From Takakia lepidozioides (lineage: Eukaryota > Plantae > Bryophyta), in contig CM060734.1 in the NCBI GenBank assembly GCA_030704615.1, forward strand, positions 5,828,001 through 5,892,000: DNA of 64,000 bases. Reading direction: 5' to 3'. This document shows, piece by piece, positions 11,100-49,630 of the stretch. Made by a program: the position numbers and the translations under genes. The number at the start of each line of letters is the position of its first letter. The stretch's first letter is position 1. Under the pieces are notes generated by a model that saw only the letters and a program-made list of their open reading frames with translations, was not told where the DNA came from and did no database searches.

Positions 11100-14000
11100 C
11101 GTAATTTTTGGAAATACGAGGTTCATCCTTTGAACCATTTTTGAATGACCTCATACTTGTTCGGTACCTGTTCGACGACATGTACAATATACTGGCAAAG
11201 TTTCAAAACAATCAAAAATTGCTGAATGAAGATACCATTGGTTCACCCATTGCAATATTTAAATCGAACTCATACTTGTCCAGTACCTTTAAGAGGGCAT
11301 GTACAATGCAATGGCAAAGTTTGAAAGCATTCAAAAAATTGGCACATCAAGTAACCATTGGTTCATCATGTGAACCATTTTTTTATTGATCTCATACTTG
11401 TCCGGTCCATGTAAGAGGGCAAGTAGAACATACTGGCAAAATTTCAAATCATTCAATTTTTTTTTTATCAAGGAACCTTTGGTTTATCCTTTTCACCATT
11501 AACGATTAATCACGAATAAATGAACAGGCGAATAAATCATTTGTCTCCCCATCGACACCAAGCCATTCCAGAATGTAATTGAATTTAAAATTAATTTTAA
11601 GCCAATAAATAGGTTTGCACTGCCTTTCATTAGGGGTTTTTGGCACGTATCGATTTGTTTTTGGCTTAATTTTGTTCTGCGGCTTCAAGCATCCCACTGC
11701 TACTCCCCCGCCAAAATTTGGACCAATCAAAAATGCCCCAAAAAAAAGGTGTTCTCTTCGCTCACTATTGCAGAACTCTCTCTGAAGAGTGCATGAAGTA
11801 GAGCACAAATCAAGTTTGGAGTGCAAAACAGGCAAGAAACTGTGGTTTTGGGTCCAAATGAATTTTGATCGCTCCCAAATTTGGCACGCACGTTGCATAT
11901 GGAGTCATTACACGTCCCATTCAAAACCAAAATGAAAAAAAAAACATGAGCACGCGAAATGCAGTCCAAACAGGTCCCAAGGTAATAGCAGATCCAACAG
12001 AATACATTCAATGGGTGAACGGATGGTTGCCCATCCAAATCATTTTTGTTTGCTTCCAAACTTTGCCAGTACGTTCGAGACACCCTCTCACAGGTCCCAG
12101 ACTAATATCAGATCAATCAAAATTCATTCGATGGCTCAACGGATGGTTGGCCATCGAAATTATTTTGGTTTGCTTTGAGACTTGGCCAGTATGTTCAATG
12201 TACCATGGAAGAGGCCCCAGAGTAATATGAGATCAATCAAAATTCGTTCAATGGGCCAACGGATGGTTGCCTATCCGAATGATTTTCGTTCGCTTTGAGA
12301 CTTGGCGAGTGTGTTCAATGTACCCTCTGATAGGTCCCAGTGTAGTATGAGATCAATCAAAATTCGTTCGATTGGCCAATGAGGCATTCATTTGTCATCT
12401 GGTTTTTGTTCATTGCGAAAAATAAATCATGCAATGCGTGCACGGCTATTGCACCCATTGAACGAATGTGGTTGAAGCCCCTCTTTTGCCCGCATGTGCT
12501 TGAACATGTGTGCGACACATGTGCGGAGACACAACAGACAAATATCGACGCCAAGCCATTCCAGAATGTAATTGAATTTAAAATTAATTTTAAGCCAATA
12601 AATAGGTTTGCACTGCCTTTCATTGGGGGTTTCTGGCACATATCGATTTTGTTTTTGGCTTAATTTTGTTCTGCGGCTTCAAGCATCCCACTGCCAAAAT
12701 TTGGACCAATCAAAAATGCCCCAAAAAAAAAGTGTTCTCTTCGCTCACTATTGCAGAACTCTCTCTGAAGAGTGCATGAAGTAGAGCACAAATCAAGTTT
12801 GGAGTGCAAAACAGGCAAGAAACTGTGGTTTTGGGTCCAAATGAATTTTGATCGCTCCCAAATTTGGCATGCACGTTGCATATGGAGTCATTACACGTCC
12901 CATTCAAAAACAAAATGAAAAAAAAAACATGAGCATGCGAAACGCAGTCTAACAGGTCGCAAAGTAATAGCAGATCCAACAAAATACATTCAATGGGTGA
13001 ACGGATGGTTGCCCATCCAAATCATTTTTGTTTGCTTCCAAACTTTGCCAGTACGTTTGAGACACCCTCTCACAGATCCCGGACTAATATCAGATCAATC
13101 AAAATTCATTCGATGGCTCAACGGATGGTTGGCCATCGAAATTATTTTGGTTCGCTTTGAGACTTGGCCAGTATGTTCAATGTACCATGGAAGAGGCCCC
13201 AAAAGTAATATGAGATCAATCGAAATTCGTTCAATGGGCCAACGGATGGTTGCCCATCCAAATGATTTTCGTTCGCTTTGAAACTTGGCGAGTGTGTTCA
13301 ATGTACCCTCTGATAGGTCCCAGTGTAATATGAGATCAATAGTTAACGATTAATCATGAATCATCCAACAAGGGAACTGTTGGTTCACCCTTTGAACCAT
13401 TTAACATTGACATCATACTTGTTCAGTAACTTTAAGAGGGCATGTACAAGACACTTGCAAAGTTTCAAATCAATCCAAAATCATTTGGCAGGGGAATGAT
13501 TGGTTCACCCATAGCCAATTTGAGGGGCTAAAATTGCCATTTCAGGGGCTGCACTAGCAATTGTCATTTCAGGGGCTAGAATTGCAATTTGAGGGGTTGG
13601 AATTGACAATTTCAAGGGCTTAAATTACAATTTGAGGGGCGGCCGGGGTTGGTCATTTTAGGGACTGACATTACCAATTTTAAGGGCTTGAATTGCATTT
13701 TGAATTGTAATTCAAGGGTTAGAATGGGCCATTGGGGGGCTAGAATTACCAAAGCAATGACATCCAAAGCAATATAAAATCATTTGATAGCGGAATGATT
13801 GGTTCACCCTTTCAACCATTTTTTATTCACGTCATACTTGTCCGGTACTTGTAAGAGGGCATGTGGCTGACACTTGCAAAGCTTCAAAGCAATGTAAAAT
13901 CATTTGATAGGGGAACAATTGGTTCACCCTTTCAACCATATTTTACTGACCTCATACTTGTCTGGTACCTTTAAGATGGCATGTGAAAGACACTTGCAAA

Positions 14001-15030
14001 GCTTTAAAGCACTCAAAAATCATTTGATATGTTCATGATTGATTCACCCTTTCAACCATTTTAGATTGACTTGAAACTTGTGAAAGACCTGTAAGAGGGC
14101 ATGTACAAGACACTTGCAAAGTTTCAAATCAATTTAAAATCATTTGGTAGGGGGACGATTGGTTCACCCTTTAAACCATTTTAGATTGATGTCATACTTC
14201 TCAAAGACGTGTAAGAGGGCATGTAGAAGACACTTGCAAAGTTTCGGAGCAATAAAATATCATTTCATCGGGGAAGTTTCCATTCACCCTATCATCCAAT
14301 TTTGAATTGAACTGGATTTTTACTAAATAAAATGATTTAGAGGCCATAGGATTGTGAGGCGCATGGTATGGGGCGCAATGATTTTGTTTTTGGCTTGATT
14401 TTGTTCTATGAGTTGAACCCTCACACTACCACATCATTCCCAAAAAATGTACCAAAAAAAAATGTTTGAAAAAAAACGTTCATCATTTGCTCTATGCTCA
14501 CTATTGCAGAACTCTTTATGAAGAGTGCATGAAGTTGAAGATAACTTCACCTTGGAGTGCAAATGAGGGAATAAAATGTGTTTTGGATGCAGACGATGTC
14601 TGTTCATGGTGATATTTTGCATGCAATCCTTCATGTTGTTATCAAGCATATGGCTTCATAATGGAATTAAAAATAATTCATGTGCAGGCGAAAGGTTGTT
14701 TTCTATACTACCTCCGTTATGAATTTGAATAACCCATTCAAACAACTTTGTTGAAGTTCAACTTTGGTCCATATGTGCTTAAGTACGTATAAATCACATA
14801 CACAAAGTTGCAAGTGAAGAAAAAATCATTTGCCCCCCGAACGACTCGTTAAACCTTTCAACCAATTTTCAATCACGATCATTTAATAGGGGAACTATTG
14901 GTTCACCCTTAGAACCATTTTAGATTGACCTCATACTTGTCCGGTAACTTAAAAAAAACATGTACAAGACACTCCCAAAGTTTCAAATCAATCTAAAATC
15001 ATTTGGCAGGGGAACGATTGGTTCACCCAT
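11100..15030. repeat. Complex satellite: ~120-bp monomers in both orientations, internal ~0.8-kb duplication and ~21-bp subrepeat (13520-13750)
   Basis: Monomer GGTTCACCCTT...TCATACTTGT...AAGAGGGCATGT recurs; 11960-12370 and 12960-13340 are reverse-complement monomers; 11535-12360 duplicates 12548-13340. Confidence 0.9.
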
Positions 15031-15219
15031 TGACCCGGTGTACACTGTTACTCTTTAAGATTCGTGGGCGTGGTGCTTGATTATCCCATATGATGGACCC
15101 AGGTGTCATGGCCAAGTAACAAACCATTAAAACATTATGGTACGAGACAAACACAATTGAAAACAACATTTATTCAAACATGATATACAGTCAGAGGTCT
15201 ACAAGTTTTTATCCATCCT

Positions 15220-21360: not shown

Positions 21361-24300
21361 GCCAACTTTTCCTTCTTCTTGCTCTTCCTCCTGAGCTCTT
21401 CTCTTCTTCCTCATCTTCTTCCTCATCATCATCCCTCTTATCTATCCTGAGCATTCCCAATTGCACAATTATGTTGGCTGTTTTGAATGCCTCCTCCACT
21501 GTATTATGGGGTAGCATATCCATTTTCTTTTGTAACTCGGGTCTTAGTCCACTCACAAACCAAGTCTTCTGTAATCCTGGTGCTGATACAACAACTAGCT
21601 TTTTCATCATTAACTCCATCTTTTCCATATATTATTCAACAGTTTCATGCTTCTTTTGCCTCAACTGTTGTAAATTCCCATACACATCATCCTTAGTTTT
21701 GTTTGTCCTGAAACTGTTTCGGAATGTTGTACTAAGGCCATTCCAGGTTAGGAAATGATTATTAGGAAACCTTGCATACCATTCACTTGCTTTCTTGATA
21801 AGTGAACAAGGAAACAGTCTCAATTTAACATCATCGCCATTCTCATTGTTCACTATACACATGTGCTCAAATTGGCTGATGTGTACATCAGGATCCCCTT
21901 TTCCTGCATATATTGGAAAATGTGGCTTTGCCCGTGTTGGAGGTACCGCCATCTGTGGCCCTACACCCTGCCCTTTGACAGGTGCTGGTCCTTGAGGACC
22001 TGCTGTTGTAGTGGTAGAACTCCCACCAGGTGTTGGCCCCTGAGCACTCCCTGTTGCTGCCCCCCCTGTACTTGCAGTACCCTCAGCTCGAGTTGCACTA
22101 CTTCCCACACTCTCCATCCCCCCAGAGCCAGATCCAAGCTGCCCGCCTGATCCCCCTGAGCCGACACTTGTGTTGGCTTGTGATCTAAGTGCTCCACTTG
22201 ATCCAGGTCCAACAGGTTGGGATGTCCTGGTTGTAGTCTCAACCTCAACTGTTGGGTCTACTTCTTCATACTCTTCATCTTCCAAGTTCTTCTCTCTGTT
22301 TTCATCTTCCAAGTTCTTCTCTTGGATTTCTTCTTCCTCACTCATATAACTCAACTGACGTGGTGTTGGAGAGTCTGAACTCTCCATTGGCTCTGCCACA
22401 TCTTCCTCTCCTTCTTGTCGTGTGTTTTCAGAAACTCTGGAGTTCCTGCTTTTGGTGTTCCATGCCAACTCTGATCAAAGATTTCTGTCAAATCTTTAAT
22501 CCCAGGTGTACCTCAAGATCTTTCCCCTCGTGGCTGATCTTCTTCCTTACTTTACCAAATCCCTTAAAGCTTTCTTGTAAAGAATAAGAAGGAGTGGCTT
22601 CCAATTCTGGTTCTTCCGGTATAGGTGATGTACTCTATAGCCTTAATGGTTGAGAGGTCCAGATGATTCCCCTATGTCTATTCCTCTCGCTCCCAGAGAT
22701 ATGGATAATTAGCTTTCAAATAACTTTCTCTTTTTGCTGAATATCTGTGGAGTCTAGCTTCATTTTCATAATTCATGTCCCATGACTTTCACTCTTTAAA
22801 TGAGGCAATACCAAAACTCTCTTAAGTAGTATCTCTCTCGTATATGCCTGAATTTTTTTCAAGCTTTATGCACCCTTGGCTATATTAGATGGGCTTCGTT
22901 GCCATATAACCCATATGGCAAGCACGTCTGAAAAGTTTTTCTTGGTGTAAGTTTGATCCACAGATATCCTTAGGAATCCAATTCTTTACCAGTACAAGTT
23001 CTTCATGCATATGAGTAAAACATTCACTTTCCGTTCCTCCCAGCCTTCAAACTCCACTCGTTTAATGGATAGCAACGCTATCACATAACCAATGTTGGCA
23101 ACCATCTAGCTCTCCTTTTACAGGCCACTTGATAAATCTTTATCACTCCTTCTCTCCAGACCCTACTCTGGATCACACCATACACTCTCTTAGATGTTTT
23201 CTTTGCAACCGTCTTGGCAATTCCAAGAACCTCTGAAAGAATTGTTTTTGGACAATATTTTCTTTCTTTCTTAGTTTCACAGGGAATTTGATTCACATCA
23301 ATTCCTTGATTCTCATCCCCATGATCCCATCGGAGCCTGTTGACCACATCGGGTTGTTCTTGACTCAGTTCCCCAGTATGGGTCTTCCAAATGTCGAGCG
23401 GGCTTTTACACTCACCCATCCCCTTAGCTATCCGGGTGGAACTCCAAGATAGAAGAGTTGGAAATCTCTAAATACTTAGCCCCTCTCAGAACAATCAGTC
23501 ATGACCTACAACTAGATGTATCATGGGGTGCTTCATATTTGTTATCCTTCTCACATTCATGTTAGCAAAGTTACTTAACTGTCTATGATTAAGTATCAGA
23601 TTGCTTCTCAATCTACCATGTTTCATCTACTCAAACTTCATTCCACAGCTTCACTCATTCTCTCTACGACGTGTGAATATACAATAATAATCATATTAAT
23701 ATCTATCAGTATCAGGCCGAAGCATGGGTGTCTCTAACTGTTCTACATTGCAGCTCTACAGCTTGCATGTATCAAGCATCATCTCGTCGTATCTCCTCCT
23801 CTATGTAAACTCCATCCCTATACTCCAAGATCGTGCTCTCCGTCGTGATGCCAGAACATGTCCCAGCCGTGATCTCCCCAGTAACGTCCAAGAAGTTCCC
23901 CTCCCCTCGTCGCTACTCTGCATATTCTACTTGCAAGCTGTTCGAACCGCCTAATTAACTAACTGCCATCCCAGACAGAATGCACGTTCCCTCTGCAGAT
24001 GTCGTTACCACACAATCATTCCCTGCCAATGATAATCGTCCCCTGTGAACGCTGTGACAGGCTGTGCCAAGCTATGTCGGGCTGTGACTTGCCGTGTCAG
24101 ACTGTGACTGGCTGTGTGAAGCTGTTTCGGGTTGTGACTGGCTGTATCAGGCTACGTCTGACTGTGTCAGGTTGTGTCGGACTGTGTCAGGCTGTGATAG
24201 GCTTTGATAGACTGTGATAGATTGTGTCGGGCTATGATAGGCTGTGTAAGCCTGTGACTGACTGTGTGAGCCTGTCTGCCACCCCTAAGGTCTGTGTCTG

Positions 24301-41169: not shown

Positions 41170-43672
41170 ATTACCCCTGCAATACTTGTGTACATCCTTG
41201 AACAAAATAGGCCACCAGTAACCTGCAAGTAGTAATTTTCTGCTAGTAGTCTCCTCTCCAAAATGACCTCCAGCCACTTCTTTATGAACTTCTTCCAAAA
41301 CTTTATTTACTTCATGGTGGTACAAGCATCGTTTAAGTACTCCATCAGGTCCTAGCTTATACAATCTTCCACCTATCATAGTGTATGGTAAAGCCTTGAT
41401 AGCTATTCTTTTCCTTTGCTCCTTCCCATAATTGGGTGGGCACTGACCATGAGTAAGATAATATCTGATTGGCCACTGCCAATCTAACCAATCATCTGCA
41501 CTTCCCTGCACCTCCACTGCAAATAAACTCGCATCAGGCAGTTGGTCGTCTACTCCCGTGGCGGCCTCTCCCGTTGATAGCCGTGACAAGTGATCTGCCA
41601 CAAGATGCAAACGGCCAGGCTTGTAAACAACTTCGAATTCAAACTCGTGCAAGATTATCATCCATCTTGCTATCTTGCCACTTATCAAAGGCTTGTTCAC
41701 CAGATATATCAAAGCTTGATGATCCACATAAAACATAAACTTCCTTCCCAATAGGTAATGCCTGAATTTCTTGACTGCATAAATCATTGCCAAAGCTTCT
41801 TTTTCAGTTGTGCTATAGTTCCTCTCAGCACTGTTCAACAATCTGCTAGCATAGTACACAAGTGAATCTATGTTTCATGTGATAACACAGCTCCCAATGC
41901 TTCTCCTGAGGCATCACAGTGTACATGAAATACTACATGCCAGTGAGGGTTAATCAACACAGGTGTAGTTGTTACTGACAATGTAAGTGCTTCAAATGCC
42001 TGTTGACATTCAGCTGTCCATGCAAACACTGCATCCTTCTTCAAAAGCTTGCGTAATGGAGTTGCCATCTGTGCATACCGTCTGACAAACCTTCTATAAT
42101 AAGTAGTTTGTCCAAGGAACCTCCTTAGACCCTTAACGCTACTTGGTGGTGGTGAGACTTTAATAGCCTCTGTCTTTCTAGGATCCACAAGCAGTCCCTT
42201 CTTACACACAATGTGTCCTAGTAGTACCCCTGAGTTCACACAGAAAGTACACTTTTTTGGATTCAAACCAAGACCTCTCATCCTGCATCTGGCCAGACAT
42301 AACTCCAACTTTTGCAAGTGCTCATTCTTAGAACTGTACACACTGAAGTCATATAAGAACACTTGCATGAAATCATCCAGATACTCATGGAAAGATTCAC
42401 TTATCACTCTCTGGAAAGTTGCTGGTGCATTACAAAGTCCAAAAGGCATGACTTTGTATGCATAAGCACCCCAGTCTGTGATGAAAGCTGTCTTTCCCTG
42501 GTCTTCTTCTGCTACCTGCACTTGGTTATACCCACTGAAGCCATCCATGAATGAGTACATCTCATGGCCTGCCACAGTGTCCAGTACAGCTTCTGTGAAT
42601 GACAAAGGAAATGGATCTTTCTTTGTACACACATTCAACTTCTTATAGTTTACACAACCTCTCAGTTTGTCATTCTTCTTGGGGACTATCACAATGGGTG
42701 ACAGCCAAGTTGTATACTCTATCGGGTATATGAACTTAGCCTCAGCCAGCTTCTTGATCTCTTCCCCTTCTGTGCATAGTTAGGATTCATCCTATACCTT
42801 GCCTGTTTAATTGGTACTGACCCTGGTTCCAGTTCAATCTTATGCTGGCAAATCTCAGGTGGTATCCCCTTCAGATCCTCATGCCTCCAAGCAAATACAT
42901 CCTTGTATTTGATAAACAGGCTCTTAGCTTCCTCAAAGAATTATGGCTCCAAGTCAGCCCCTACTTTCACCATTCTTGATTCCTCCTCAGTTCCCATATT
43001 CACTTCTCTCACCTGCTCTTCAGCTGTGATTGTCCATCCAGCCACTACTTCATCCTGTAAACTCACAGTGGCTGATTCTTCTAGGATTTCTATTTCTCCC
43101 TCTCTTTCCTCATAGAAATATGGTGGGTAATTACTTGTTTCCCCCTCCATTGGTGTTGTTGTTACTGCACCGCAGCAGATACCTTTAAAACAACTCAGAC
43201 CTCCCAGTTGCATTTCTGCAACCTGCTCCCACTCTGGGTGTGCAGCAAACAGGGTAGCTTCCTGCTCCTCATCAAGTCCTCCCCTCCAGTCATACTCCCT
43301 AACTCCACGAGGTCTTCTGGTAGCAGGTAGCTTACTAGATTTCTTAGTGGTGACCTATATCTTGTGCTTCCCATCAGCACAGTCAGTAACTGGGAATTCC
43401 AATCATGGAATACCCTGGCCTGTTTCAGCCATGGTCGACCCAGCAATAAGGAGTAAGCTTCCATAACATCATCCATTTTCAACACAGTCACTGTGATCTT
43501 AAAGATCATCTTCTAGATCTGTATCTTTACTCCTCTTATCAAGCCTAAAGGCTGTACACTCCTTTGATCTGCCATTGTTACTGTGAATGGGCTGGTTTCA
43601 TGTTACTTAGACCAAGCTTCTGCCTTAATTGGTCTGTCATAATATTCACTCCTGAGCCTCCATCTATCAGTA
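41170..43672 (-). pseudogene. Gypsy pol (PR-RT-RNaseH-integrase zinc finger), frameshifted
   Basis: ORFs 43195..43509, 41868..42692 and 41041..41859. Confidence 0.93.
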
Positions 43673-43810
43673 TGTAGAATAAAACTAGAATCAATCCTAA
43701 AAGATGATCAATTAGTTCTAAGGTTCGTTCGCTGGGGAAAGCACTATACGACTAATACATAATGATGCTAGACTATTCTACCTCTCTCTATCCCTTCTTT
43801 GAAACAACTT

Positions 43811-44113
43811 TTACCAACAGTCATCTTCATCCAACACGATCATCATTCTCCTAGATTCATAAATATTCTCTCCATCTTCTATTAACTCTGCTCCATCGGC
43901 TGAAATCAAATACCACTGCTCCACTATGTTTTTCCTCCAATAATCTCTCTGATACAAAGCCAACAACTCTCGATACCATTCTTTACTGACTAACCATAGA
44001 TTGATTATCTCTTTGTCGCTACATTGTAGTCTTTTAAAGATATCTAGAGACAAACTATTAGGCAGTCCGGTAATTAGTTCTACAGGATATGCTATCTGTT
44101 CTCCTTCACACAT
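43811..44113 (-). CDS. F-box mini-protein B (100 aa) within solo LTR
   Basis: Intact ORF; ELITGLPNSLSLDIFKRL...NLWLVSKEWYR; paralog of A (30/57 identities by manual count). Confidence 0.75.
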   Translation of the reverse strand: MCEGEQIAYPVELITGLPNSLSLDIFKRLQCSDKEIINLWLVSKEWYRELLALYQRDYWRKNIVEQWYLISADGAELIEDGENIYESRRMMIVLDEDDCW

Positions 44114-44129
44114 CGCTAGTGATCATTCT

Positions 44130-44438
44130 TCACCACCAATTTTGTTTCTCTAGTCGCTCCAGGGATTTTCCCTCACCAAAATTATGATTCCATTCTCTCA
44201 TAAGTTCATGATAGCCTTTAAATGGTCTATACCACTTCTGCAACCAACTATGCTTCCAATAACAACTCCGGTATAAGATGAATATCTCCCTACACCATCC
44301 TTTATTGACCAATTGCAATAAGAATACTTCTTTATCACTGCAACAAAGCTTCTGAAATATTGTTATCGATAAATGGTCTGGTAATCCAGTTATCAACTCT
44401 GACACTTCCTTTATTCCCTCACCATGGCTCTCTGCCAT
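44130..44438 (-). CDS. F-box mini-protein A (102 aa) within solo LTR
   Basis: Intact ATG-to-stop ORF; ELITGLPDHLSITIFQKL...LLQLVNKGWCR fits the F-box LP..I...L...V.K.W consensus. Confidence 0.75.
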   Translation of the reverse strand: MAESHGEGIKEVSELITGLPDHLSITIFQKLCCSDKEVFLLQLVNKGWCREIFILYRSCYWKHSWLQKWYRPFKGYHELMREWNHNFGEGKSLERLEKQNWW

Positions 44439-45123
44439 GCAAATGATTTTACTTCACAATTACACTCCCATCCTGAATCCAATTGAAGACTCTTTCTATC
44501 TTTGTTTCCTTAATCTGCTCCTTCTTGAGCTTTGAATCTCCTTATCGATATTTCTCTTGATAGACTAGAAACTAATTCTCACATCCAAATTCTTATCTGT
44601 TTCATTTATGCACATTCTCACCATCTCATATAATTATGGTTCTTCAATTCTTACACAAAGAAACACCTTCTCATTCCATCACTCCATTCTTCACACATAC
44701 ACAAAGTGAATTGCACTTTCTTTTTCTTCTTCTTCTCATTCATAAATCACAACACTGCAAGAACGCAATACTAAATCTACCATTGCAGAATAACTCTATA
44801 GTCTATCTTCTACTCACTCTACTCTCCCTACTCCCGGTCACGACTCTCTGGCTCAATTGACACTTCTGCTTCTCAAGAACGCATTATATAGCAGAGCGCT
44901 TCAATAACTGTAATAACCGCTCAAACTCCTTCATCCATCATTTACAATTATTCATCCATCTCTTCTATCATTCAGTCCAAGATAGACTATCGACTGTATA
45001 CAAGATATCGAAGAACATTGCCCTATCGCAGCAATATCGAAGGTATCGCAGGCTATATCGATGAGAAAGATATTAAAAAGTTCTAAAAATTGTCATTAAG
45101 TCAGAAATTCCTATTATTCTACA

Positions 45124-47691
45124 CAGTACATCAGTCAAGTCTGTGCTTCCAATTCTCAATTGGATTACTGGCATAGAATCATCAAAGTCCATGACTGTTT
45201 CTCGCCCTTCAGGCTTCACATTATAACTTGTCACCTTGCTGCTCAGGTCTGTGTTCTCTGTCACATGAGCAATCTGATTGATTGCTTGATACAGCCTGTG
45301 CCTACAATGAGGTGCCACAGCCAATAGCTGTCCAATGGTAATCTCAGCTTTGGACTGGCATATTACTTCAGCCAAAGTCCCTTCATTACCCTGCACTTGT
45401 GAAGCCTCCTGCTTCACTTTCTCTAAACCGTCTTTATCTTCTCCTTCAGAATCAGAAGAATCTGCCATAGGGATATCAGTATCATTCTGCATTTCCCTTA
45501 TGGTATCAGCCACTTCCTTGTGCAGTTCCTTCTCATCTCTCCAAGCCTCATCATCTTTAGGCACATCACTGCCATCTTCATTAACATCTTCTTCCTCATC
45601 CACTGGAGGTATTAGTTTAGCTTTGCTTCTGGTAACTATCATTGTACTTACTTCTGGTACAAAATATGGCCTAACCATGTGAGCTGCCACTACTGGGCCC
45701 TCATTCACAGGAGTTCTCATCTCATTCTGGTGCCTGATCCAGAATGGACAGGCTGCTTTGCGATGTCATGCCTACGATAGTAACACAGTTCTTCACCATT
45801 GGGTCCTCGCCCTTGGTCTATTATGGGATTATTTCTATAATCCTGATTCCCTGGCTGGTAATTCCCCTTTGGATTACCCTGATAATTGCCTCTGGGATTG
45901 CCTTGGTAATTCCCTCTTGGATTACCTCTTCCTGCCATACCATTGTTATATCCACCAGGCCTACCATAGTGGTCATGTTCATTGTTTCTTCTTGGCTGGG
46001 GCTGCACTTGATGGCAGATGCACCCTCATTTGCCTAGGTTCTATTGCAGCTGTCCTTCTGTTGTAATAACAATTCTCAGTAGAACGGTTATCCATTTTAC
46101 AGATAGTATAGTGTTTCTCCTTCATGTGGCATTCAGCTGTGGTATGGCCTTCATTCTGGCATTTTGCACACCAAACACCCTTCCTTCAATGTGTTGCAGC
46201 CTCTGTGGCATACTTCTTCAAGATTTCCTCCAGTCTTTTCTCATAGTTGTCCCTCTTCAACTTTTCCTTCTTCTTGCTCTTCCTCTTGAGCTCTTGCTCT
46301 TCTTCCTCATCTGACTCATCTTCAGAGTCCTCATCCTCCCTTTTATCTCTCCTGAGCATTCCCAATTGCTCAATTATGTTGGCTGTTTCAAATGCCTCCT
46401 CCACCGTATTATGGGGTAACATATCTACTTTATTTTGTAATTCAGGTCTTAGTCCACTCACAAACCAGGTCTTATGTAACCATGGTGCTGGTACAGCAGC
46501 CAGCTTTTTCATCATTAACTCCATCTTTTCCATGTACTCCACAACAGTTTCATGCTTCTTTTGCTTTAACTGTTGTAAACTCCCATACACTTCATCCTCA
46601 GTTTTGCTTGTCCTGAACCTGTTTCGGAATACTGTACTAAGGCCATTCCAGGTTAGGAAATGATTATTAGGAAACCTTGCATACCATTCACTTGCTTTCT
46701 TGATAAGTGAACAAGGAAACAGTCTCATCTTGGCATCATCGCCATTCTCATTGTTCACAATACACATGTGCTCAAATTGGCTGATGTGTACATCAGGATC
46801 CCCTTTTCCTGCATATATTGGAAAATGTGGGTTTGCCTGTGTTGGAGGTACTGCCATCTGTGGCCCTACATCCTGCCCACTGACAGGTGCTGGTCCTTCT
46901 GTTGGTGCTGGTCCTTGAGGACCTGCTGTTGTAGTGGTGGAACTCCCAACCAGGTGTTGGCCCCTGAGCACTCCCTGCTACTGGCTCCTCTGTACTTACA
47001 GTATTCCCAGCTACAGTTGCACTACTTCCCACACTCCCTGTCCCCCCAGAGCCAGATCCAAGCTGATCGCCTGATCCCCCTGAGCCGACATCTTTGTTGG
47101 CCTGTGATTCAAGTGCTCCACTTGATCCAGGTCCAACAGGTTGGGATGTCCTAGTTGTAGTCTCAACCTCAACTGTTGGTTCTACTTCTTCATACTCTTC
47201 ATCTTCAAATTCTTCTCTCTGTTTTCATCTTCCAAGTTCTTCTCTTGGATTTCCTCTTCCTCACTCATATAACTCAACTGAAGTGGTGTTGGAGAGTCTC
47301 AACTCTCCGTTGGCTCTGCCACATCTTCCTCTCCTTCTTTGTCTCGTGCTTCAGAAACTGGAGTTCCTGCTTTTGGTGTTCCATATCAACTCTGATCAAA
47401 GATTTCTGTCAAATCTTTAATCCAGGGATGTACCTCATATCTTTCCCCTCGTGGCTGATCTTCTTCCTATACCAAATCCCTTAATCTTTCTTGTAAAGAA
47501 TAAGAAGGAGTGGCATCCAACTCTGGTTCTTCCGGTATGGGTGAGGTACTCTCTGGTCTTAATGGTGTGAGAGGGCCAGATGATTCCCCTATGTCTATTC
47601 CTCTATCCCAGAGATATGGATAATTAGCTTTCAAATAACTTTCTTTTTTTACTGAATATCTGTGGAGTCTAGCTTCTCTTTCATCACTCAT
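45124..47691 (-). pseudogene. Gypsy gag, frameshifted
   Basis: Retrotrans_gag core in 46186..46971, NPRGNYQG repeats, degenerate zinc knuckle near 45760-45790. Confidence 0.88.
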
Positions 47692-47711: not shown

Positions 47712-48386
47712 TCAATAAGGCAATAACCAAAACTCTCTTCTGTAGTATCTCTCGTATATGCCTGGATTTCTTTCAAGTTTTAATGCACCCTTGGCTATAC
47801 TAGAAGTCTCCGTTACCATATGGCAAGCACGTCTAGAAAGCTGTTCTTGGTGTAAGTTTGATCCACAGGATATCCAATACTTTACCAGTACAAGTTCTTC
47901 ATGCATGTGAGTGTAAACATTCACTTTCCGTTCCTCCCAGCTTTCAAACTCCACTCGTTTAATGGATAGCAATGCTATCACATAAACCAGTGTTGGTAAC
48001 CAACTTGCTCTCCCCCTACAGGCCACTTGATAAATCTTTATCACTTTCTCCAGACCCCACTCATGATCAGCATCATGCACTCTCTTAAGAATGTTTTCTT
48101 TGCAACCGTCTGGCAATTCCAAAAACCTCTGAAAGAATTGTTTGGACAATCTTTCCTTCTCAGTTCCACAGGGAATTTGATTCATATCAAATTCTTTGAT
48201 TCTCCAACCACCATGATCCCACCAGATGCCTGTCACATCTGGTTGTTCTTGACCCAGTTCCCCAGTACGGTCGCCAAATGTTGAGCGGCTTTTACTCACC
48301 CATCCCTTCGCTATCCGAGGTGGAAACTCTAAGATATAAGAGTTGGATATCTCTAAGCACTCAGCCCGCTCAGAACAATCAGTCAT
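47712..48386 (-). CDS. ORF0 (224 aa) upstream of gag with an internal F-box-like motif
   Basis: Open ORF ending 20 bp before the gag ATG; FLELPDGCKENILKRV...VIKIYQVACR...W. Confidence 0.6.
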   Translation of the reverse strand: MTDCSERAECLEISNSYILEFPPRIAKGWVSKSRSTFGDRTGELGQEQPDVTGIWWDHGGWRIKEFDMNQIPCGTEKERLSKQFFQRFLELPDGCKENILKRVHDADHEWGLEKVIKIYQVACRGRASWLPTLVYVIALLSIKRVEFESWEERKVNVYTHMHEELVLVKYWISCGSNLHQEQLSRRACHMVTETSSIAKGALKLERNPGIYERYYRREFWLLPY

Positions 48387-48691: not shown

Positions 48692-49630
48692 GTTCGATCC
48701 CTCTCCTTGGCAGTCACAGTGGCTGCCGTGTCTCTAGTGCGGAGGTAGTCCAACACAGCCGAATCCTCATGTATATCTCTAGCACCACCTGGCTCATCAC
48801 TAGCCTCAGGGTCCTCAGACACTCCGTTTACAGTTATCCCTGTTGTAGGTCCAACCTGACCTCCCGATGCCAAGATACACAAAAATGCAGATGCGTGCTA
48901 TCCTGGCACCATCTCCTCGTCCGTCTTAACCATGTCACCGAGCTCTAGTGTCATCCTGCTGGCTCGTGCATGGATTGCGACTCAATCCATCCGCATCCCG
49001 ATTGACCAAACCTGGTCGATGCACAACCTGAAAGTCATACTCTTGGAGTATAAGTGCCCACCGTGCAAGCTTCCCCATAAGCTTGTCTGACTCCATCAAC
49101 CACTTGAGTGGCTGGTGATCTGTGACAAGGGTGAAGAGATTGCCATATAGATAGCACCTGAAGTGTGTCACGGCCCACACTGCAGCTAAGCACTCTCCCT
49201 CATATGAGCTATACTTAGCCTCTGCAGCGTTGTTCGAGCGGCTAGCATAAGCCACAACAAACTCTCTTCCCTCATCATCCACCTGTGTGAGCACCGCTCC
49301 AAGCCCCAACAGGCTCCAATCCATGTGCAGCTGAAAGGAACGCCCCCTGATAGGTCGTCTCAAGATGGGCGCCGAGGTTAACCTCGCCTTGAGATCTTGA
49401 AAAGCTCGTTCTTGCTCATCTTCCCATTGCCACTCCTGGTCCACCTTGATAAGCTTGGTTAGAGCCTTTGCAATAGCACTAAATCCCTTGACAAACGGTC
49501 TATAATAGTTTGCAAACCCCATGAAAGCTCAAACTCGGCTCACATCCGTGGGGCGTGGAATCTGTGCAATGGCCTCTATCTTAGTCTGCTGTACCCCCAA
49601 TCCTCCAGGATATATCATGTGATCCAGAAC
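48692..49630 (-). pseudogene. RT-connection/RNase H fragment of a second Gypsy family
   Basis: GFANYYRPFVKGFS...DWSLLGLGAVLTQ...YSSYEGECLA...TDHQPL...DADGLSR. Confidence 0.92.

Follow-up and report, generated by a model that had tools for sequence, protein, structure and literature searches.

Putative tandem F-box mini-genes in a probable solo long terminal repeat of Takakia lepidozioides

Introduction

Polerovirus P0, nanovirus Clink, Agrobacterium VirF and baculovirus LEF-7 are viral and bacterial F-box proteins that hijack the ubiquitin ligase SCF (named after SKP1, cullin and F-box) of the host, and LEF-7 has three F-box domains (PMC3588083 and PMC6410027; PMC6105029 for LEF-7). Here we describe a 1451-bp element, very probably the solo long terminal repeat (LTR) of a retrotransposon, that contains two tandem open reading frames (ORFs) with an F-box signature. 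It occupies positions 43673–45123 of a 64,000-nucleotide (nt) stretch of the Takakia lepidozioides genome (assembly GCA_030704615.1, contig CM060734.1, positions 5,828,001–5,892,000), which we call the window and whose coordinates are used throughout. By analogy, the two predicted mini-proteins (ORF A and ORF B) would resemble P0, Clink, VirF and LEF-7 in being small parasite-encoded proteins with an F-box-type motif and putative SKP1 docking, and would resemble LEF-7 further in that the F-box is repeated (three times in LEF-7, as two mini-genes here). They differ from the viral and bacterial hijackers in their carrier, an LTR retrotransposon, and in that the F-boxes form separate mini-genes rather than domains of one protein; they have no sequence relation to P0.

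Protein-coding sequence inside an LTR has a precedent in the superantigen Sag of mouse mammary tumour virus (MMTV), which the virus encodes upstream of the promoter, in the U3 part of the LTR, and whose expression comes from spliced RNAs that contain the 3′ LTR region. As with Sag, ORFs in this position are present twice per provirus and are retained in solo LTRs. Unlike Sag, the ORFs described here lie downstream of the TATA box, on what would be the R/U5 side, are two in tandem and encode F-boxes.

Accessory modules of plant LTR retrotransposons include the extra ORFs of Retand/Ogre elements (PMC11963269) and an ALKBH domain (an N6-methyladenosine demethylase) in orchid Ty3/gypsy elements (PMC9289625). 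The element described here is similar to these in being a plant LTR element with a fixed extra host-derived module, presumably serving to regulate itself or to evade control; but those modules are internal, either as a fusion with gag/pol or in the stretch that separates pol from the 3′ LTR, whereas here the module is F-box-only and lies in the LTR. The VANC proteins of Arabidopsis VANDAL transposons are anti-silencing proteins encoded by transposable elements (PMC5735166, PMC10398659). Like the mini-proteins they are accessory proteins of a mobile element; they are thought to counter host control, evolve fast and occur in several variants. VANC, however, is DNA-binding, belongs to a DNA transposon, causes sequence-specific loss of methylation and has no F-box or link to ubiquitin. 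Finally, the mini-proteins are similar to the small F-box-only proteins of plant hosts, which are about 75–150 amino acids (aa) long, begin with the F-box and lack any substrate domain that can be recognised. Those host genes, unlike the LTR ORFs, are single-copy or clustered and have their own promoters, and no host homologue of the two ORFs was found in protein searches. A full-text literature search yielded no account of an F-box gene carried by an LTR retrotransposon, be it within the LTR or elsewhere in the element, and an Arabidopsis atlas of transposable-element products makes no mention of F-boxes (PMC13547354).

Results

Two tandem ORFs with an F-box signature

The two ORFs are encoded on the minus strand and together occupy LTR positions 686–1313. 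ORF A (44130–44438; 102 aa) has an F-box segment at aa 17–57 (44268–44390) followed by an aromatic tail ending in WW; ORF B (43811–44113; 100 aa) has its F-box segment at aa 15–48 (43970–44071) and an acidic, aromatic tail ending in CW. They are separated by a 16-nt spacer (44114–44129), which places ORF B in the +1 frame relative to ORF A. The ORF lengths and the spacing are as given in an initial annotation made from the sequence. The two proteins share 38% aa identity over 98 aa with no internal gap, while their DNA identity is about 50%; identity is about 52% in the first 60 alignment columns, in good agreement with the ∼53% over 57 aa estimated in that annotation.

The initial annotation also placed an F-box at the N-terminus of both ORFs, and the HMMER comparison bears this out in part. 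Both ORFs match the Pfam models PF00646 and PF12937 (gathering cut-offs of 20.5 and 24.3 bits, respectively), and both alignments begin at model position 2; however, only ORF B passes a cut-off, and only that of PF00646 (20.9 bits, a surplus of 0.4 bits; its PF12937 score of 22.3 bits is below the threshold). The hydrophobic pattern of the three F-box helices, LP..(I/L)..(I/L)F..L ... (V/L).K.W, is present, and residues L19, P20, L23, I27, F28, L31, D35, L41, L43, V44, K46 and W48 are invariant between A and B. When a profile built from both ORFs was compared with PDB, the best match was the F-box of yeast Cdc4 (1nex_B; expectation value (E) 0.019), with an alignment spanning the hallmark columns LP..L..IF..L....V.K.W, and another F-box protein, Dia2, was also among the matches. 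The closest ESM-Atlas clusters, as judged from language-model features, are small F-box proteins. Homology of both ORFs to F-boxes is likely on these comparisons, though not proven. The tails that follow (about 45 residues) are rich in tryptophan (Trp) and tyrosine; the pairs YW, WY and EL are conserved in them, as is a Trp at the C-terminus. Upstream of ORF A, Smith–Waterman alignment against shuffled sequences gave no significant trace of an eroded third F-box unit (z about −1 to 1).

Coding constraint since an old duplication

The differences between the two ORFs carry the signature of protein-level selection. Identity at codon positions 1, 2 and 3 is 52, 64 and 35%, respectively (chi-square p 2e-4). 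The proportion of nonsynonymous differences (pN) is 0.39 and that of synonymous differences (pS) is 0.96, which is saturated, giving pN/pS of 0.41 (bootstrap 0.30–0.55); when this DNA alignment is read in either of the other frames, the ratio is 0.98 or 0.99. Constraint is stronger on the F-box half (pN 0.29) than on the tail (pN 0.54). ORFs A and B are thus old duplicates that have diverged under protein-level purifying selection. Since the two units sit 16 nt apart within one LTR, the duplication arose in the element, and the constraint therefore acted on the retrotransposon lineage, which kept the ORFs as coding accessory genes.

Dinucleotide shuffling of the LTR produced a pair of ORFs of at least 100 aa in five of 3000 trials (0.17%), a test that leaves uncounted the shared strand, the tandem layout and the homology of the two ORFs; at least one ORF of 100 aa was found in 5.8%.

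Other members of the family were seen in public sequencing contigs aligned to positions 43300–45500 (2201 letters), with runs X1, X2, X5 and X6 among the sources. Runs X1 and X2 are one sample, X5 belongs to a separate study and is labelled plant metagenome, and X6 is guessed to be RNA. The variant data comprise 40 of 361 variant places, in a partly redundant list. Among those listed, the divergent contigs that lie wholly inside the ORF block (8–19% different) show no gaps, one divergent contig spanning the 16-nt spacer has two gaps, and all indels in the element are outside the ORFs, a contrast between the ORFs and the rest of the element that is suggestive only. Family copies with different numbers of units exist: contig joints from 44175 to 44433/44492 and from 43946 to 44329 each drop about one unit.

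The 1451-bp element as a probable solo LTR

The element begins with TG (43673–43674) and ends with CA (45122–45123). Its termini form a perfect 10-bp inverted repeat (TGTAGAATAA / TTATTCTACA), and identical copies of the 5-bp target-site duplication CAGTA lie on either side of it (43668–43672 and 45124–45128). An empty site was found as well: contigs of X1, X2 and X5 join 43667 to 45124, with five letters common to both sides of the joint, and omit exactly 1456 bp, i.e. the 1451-bp element plus one copy of the duplication. The host sequence thus exists without the insert in other copies, so the element is a true insertion and its boundaries and duplication are real. Anatomy and empty site, the latter in two studies, thereby establish the TG...CA element with CAGTA duplications proposed in the initial annotation. 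We consider it very probable that the element is a solo LTR. No second copy was found in the window, and tandem-repeat and Rfam scans of the LTR showed nothing notable.

The sense strand of the LTR appears to be the minus strand, because the TATA box and the ORFs, a C-poor bias, a cluster of CGATA motifs and a junction with a sequence resembling a primer-binding site (PBS) all point that way. The TATA box predicted near 44890 is indeed there (TATATAA, 44884–44890, minus strand; LTR position 234) and is the sole TATA[AT]A on the sense strand. About 100–170 nt upstream of it, in the U3-like part, are six CGATA motifs (44988–45060, minus strand; LTR positions 64–136) spaced by 9–21 nt, which are candidate factor-binding sites. 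The sense strand has 34% A, 26% G, 30% T and 11% C; this C-poor skew matches the coding strand of the gypsy element into which the LTR is inserted and may reflect a bias, mutational or selective, that is strand-specific in these retroelements.

The junction is found in an X6 contig (record 26, 691 nt, aligned at 43681–43751) that has only the terminal 70 nt of the LTR, a related end, in common with our element. Read on the minus strand, this end is followed by TCTTTT and then by TGGCGCCGCAGCCGG, which we take to be PBS-like, with TGG pairing with the CCA end of a tRNA and then an acceptor stem and a T-arm-like CCGG; it resembles the complement of a tRNA-Asp-type 3′ end. The contig suggests a related, possibly transcribed element family. 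No tRNA genes were found in the 64-kb window.

Between the TATA-defined start and ORF A lies a putative leader (44439–44860, minus strand), in which 13 ATGs precede the ORF. It also has a GTGAGT that looks like a splice donor (LTR position 307) and, with its end at LTR position 369, an acceptor-like TTCTTGCAG. A leader intron from the donor-like site to acceptor-like sites downstream is conceivable but unsupported.

Age of this copy and abundance of the family

Relative to the family majority, this copy has at least 13 private changes in 1451 bp (∼0.9%): six in the 612 nt of the ORFs, of which four are synonymous and two nonsynonymous, and another seven in the 839 nt outside them. Intact ORFs are expected in so young a copy and do not indicate selection at this locus. 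The initial annotation had contrasted the intact ORFs with the broken ORFs of the surrounding transposable elements, which is true but not telling, as the insert is merely younger than its host. The locus itself is most likely a silent by-product of recombination between LTRs.

Summed contig depth, which is not to be equated with copy number, is about 2–7 thousand for the insert (about 50–75 for single divergent contigs) and 10^5–10^6 for the host flanks (43300–43670 and 45130–45500), where it compares with about 60 for single contigs and is roughly 50–100 times that of the insert family; as a rough reading, the insert family would have tens of copies and the host family thousands. One X5 contig from the independent study (record 21) differs from the LTR at three positions over 262 nt, which means that the family cannot be put down to faulty assembly.

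Homologue searches

Searches for homologous proteins with ORF B and with the two-sequence profile gave no matches. A lone match among 1.84 billion representative proteins (P0001) was rejected as a translated simple repeat. Exact-sequence look-ups with ORF A, ORF B and two ORFs of the host element found nothing on record. Metagenome contigs, searched with a protein profile and a degenerate DNA pattern for ELITGLP..LS, contained no related loci, and neither did viral contigs. Absence of homologues from protein collections is to be expected, since such ORFs are hidden in repeats that annotation pipelines mask.

The host element and its neighbourhood

The LTR interrupts the protease region of an older, degenerate and far more abundant Ty3/gypsy element on the minus strand. 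Recognisable parts of this host element, all on the minus strand, are gag (46186–46971; PF03732), a protease-like LLGRPWL motif (43195–43509), a polymerase-like ORF that is by eye a putative reverse transcriptase (41868–42692) and, directly upstream of gag, a 224-aa ORF0 (47712–48386). The plus strand has a GC skew of −0.2 to −0.3 from 42 to 48 kb, where the host element lies. ORF0 contains a LELPDG..ENILKRV stretch and was considered as a candidate F-box-like protein, but was rejected: no Pfam family matches it with E of 1 or below, and its comparison with the mini-protein profile in hhalign gave 0.4% probability. A second copy of the host family (21363–23510) has 88% DNA identity; its counterpart of ORF0 (22800–23502) matches ORF0 piecewise, with 35–38% aa identity and many gaps.

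Another LTR element is represented directly upstream of ORF0 by a 195-aa piece of RNase H that is intact (48935–49522, minus strand; PF17917, E 2e-35). This leaves only ∼500 bp for the 5′ LTR of the host element, which is therefore probably truncated or nested there. Elsewhere in the window, the region 11100–15100 has several blocks of 120-bp satellite arrays (63–97% identity between copies), including a 983–993-bp higher-order duplication (11551–12357 versus 12544–13340, 95%).

Discussion

The explanation that fits these observations best, and to which we give somewhat better than even chances, is that the insert is a solo LTR of a moderately repeated LTR-retrotransposon family with selected tandem F-box mini-genes, the products of which would dock on SKP1. 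The R/U5 leader downstream of the TATA box would hold a tandem duplication of a ∼320-bp unit, each unit being a ∼100-codon gene for an F-box domain and a Trp/Tyr-rich tail of about 45 residues. ORFs in this leader would be carried at the 5′ end of every transcript of the element and of any transcript of a solo LTR. Their products may dock on host SKP1 through the F-box, so that a host protein bound by the tail would be brought to the SCF ubiquitin ligase for ubiquitination, to the benefit of the element; alternatively, the tail may be inert and the mini-protein may benefit the element by tying up SKP1 as a decoy. That F-box mini-genes have been kept by an LTR retrotransposon is well supported as a reading of the sequence data, and a role of their products as SCF adaptor, decoy or anti-silencing factor is plausible by analogy.

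Several observations count against this explanation. A full-length element with this LTR was not seen; within the window the LTR is present as a single copy. Evidence at the RNA level was not found, and none of the contigs of X6, which is guessed to be an RNA run, covers the ORFs. There are 13 ATGs between the TATA-defined start and ORF A, and the layout is bicistronic, since ORF B follows ORF A after 16 nt and is read in a different frame. Translation of either ORF by ordinary scanning would accordingly be poor, and that of ORF B would depend on reinitiation, a separate start site or another non-standard mechanism. AATAAA motifs lie inside ORF A. At the protein level, ORF A is below both Pfam cut-offs (15.2 bits for PF00646 and 16.4 bits for PF12937), and AlphaFold2 returned strand-rich, uninformative models (predicted local distance difference test (pLDDT) scores of 49.8 with the two-sequence alignment and 44.6 with a single sequence). 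No homologues of the mini-proteins were found in the protein and contig collections searched, so the family rests on two sequences, and the indel contrast is drawn from a partly redundant list of variant places.

Some of these observations would also suit a passenger fragment: the LTR may have captured a piece of a host F-box gene, with the ORFs as functionless cargo that has yet to decay and a coding signature that predates the capture or stems from a short early period. LTR retrotransposons and other plant transposable elements pick up pieces of host genes. The lack of RNA evidence, X6 contigs across the ORFs included, is in keeping with such a capture, as are the ATGs ahead of ORF A and the bicistronic order, both unfavourable to translation, and the similar rate of private changes inside and outside the ORFs (6/612 versus 7/839 nt). 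We nevertheless regard it as unlikely: the 16-nt distance between the units within one LTR places the duplication in the element and not in the host, about half of the bases have changed since that duplication while both frames stayed open with no internal indel and a pN/pS of 0.41, and divergent family copies, among those listed, have no gaps in the ORFs. Even less can be said for the view that the LTR has a tandem enhancer repeat in which ORFs arose by chance and resemble F-boxes spuriously. Tandem repeats are frequent in LTRs and a C-poor strand has few stops, with at least one ORF of 100 aa in 5.8% of shuffles, but two such ORFs occur in only 0.17%, the codon-position asymmetry is confined to this frame and both paralogues independently match F-box models at the same position; this account is hardly credible.

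The element might also be something other than an LTR, namely a complete small mobile element of another kind with 10-bp terminal inverted repeats, a 5-bp duplication and an F-box cargo. There is one copy in the window with no paired arrangement seen, a perfect 10-bp inverted repeat is rather long for LTR ends, and neither a PBS nor a polypurine tract was seen beside the family's own ends among the loose contig ends listed. Set against this, TG..CA ends with a 5-bp duplication are the signature of an LTR integrase, and the length, the U3-like motif cluster with a TATA box and the strand-biased composition fit an LTR, as does the related terminal 70 nt that in X6 adjoins a sequence resembling a PBS; the element has no transposase, and we know of no DNA-transposon family with such ends. 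We thus hold a non-LTR origin to be very unlikely. A narrower version of the favoured explanation, in which the mini-proteins are specific anti-silencing factors that, like P0, send Argonaute or another silencing protein to degradation, is in our view quite unlikely. Both ORFs do have the F-box signature, and the Trp-rich tails vaguely recall Argonaute-binding Trp motifs; P0 requires an F-box-like motif and a GW-type (glycine–tryptophan) motif (PMC6410027), and anti-silencing proteins encoded by transposable elements exist (VANC, PMC5735166). However, no similarity to P0 (in Pfam matches up to E 10, PDB and protein searches) or to another known suppressor was found, and ORF B does not share the GW dipeptide present in ORF A.

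Returning to the solo LTR with selected mini-genes, a bolder extension of it can be put forward, although we doubt it: in a group of LTR retrotransposons of this seedless plant, the LTR leader may constitute a small, copy-number-variable array of F-box-only genes, with products that hijack or jam SCF to remove a host restriction or silencing factor. Such elements would provide a retrotransposon counterpart of the viral F-box suppressors, supplied by every LTR, solo ones included.

LTR-borne F-box mini-genes under selection suggest a way for a retrotransposon to tamper with its host that has not been described before. To our knowledge, few counter-defence proteins of transposable elements are known and none is an F-box protein of an LTR retrotransposon. 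If the mini-proteins do engage SKP1, retrotransposons would exploit the ubiquitin system as plant viruses do. The LTR would then be a protein-coding module as well as a promoter, scattered solo LTRs could remain sources of trans-acting factors, and in early-diverging land plants the tails could serve as baits for the host factor by which these elements are restrained. Should the function be a different one, the two ORFs would still be a clear case of selected tandem mini-genes inside a repeat that annotation pipelines mask.

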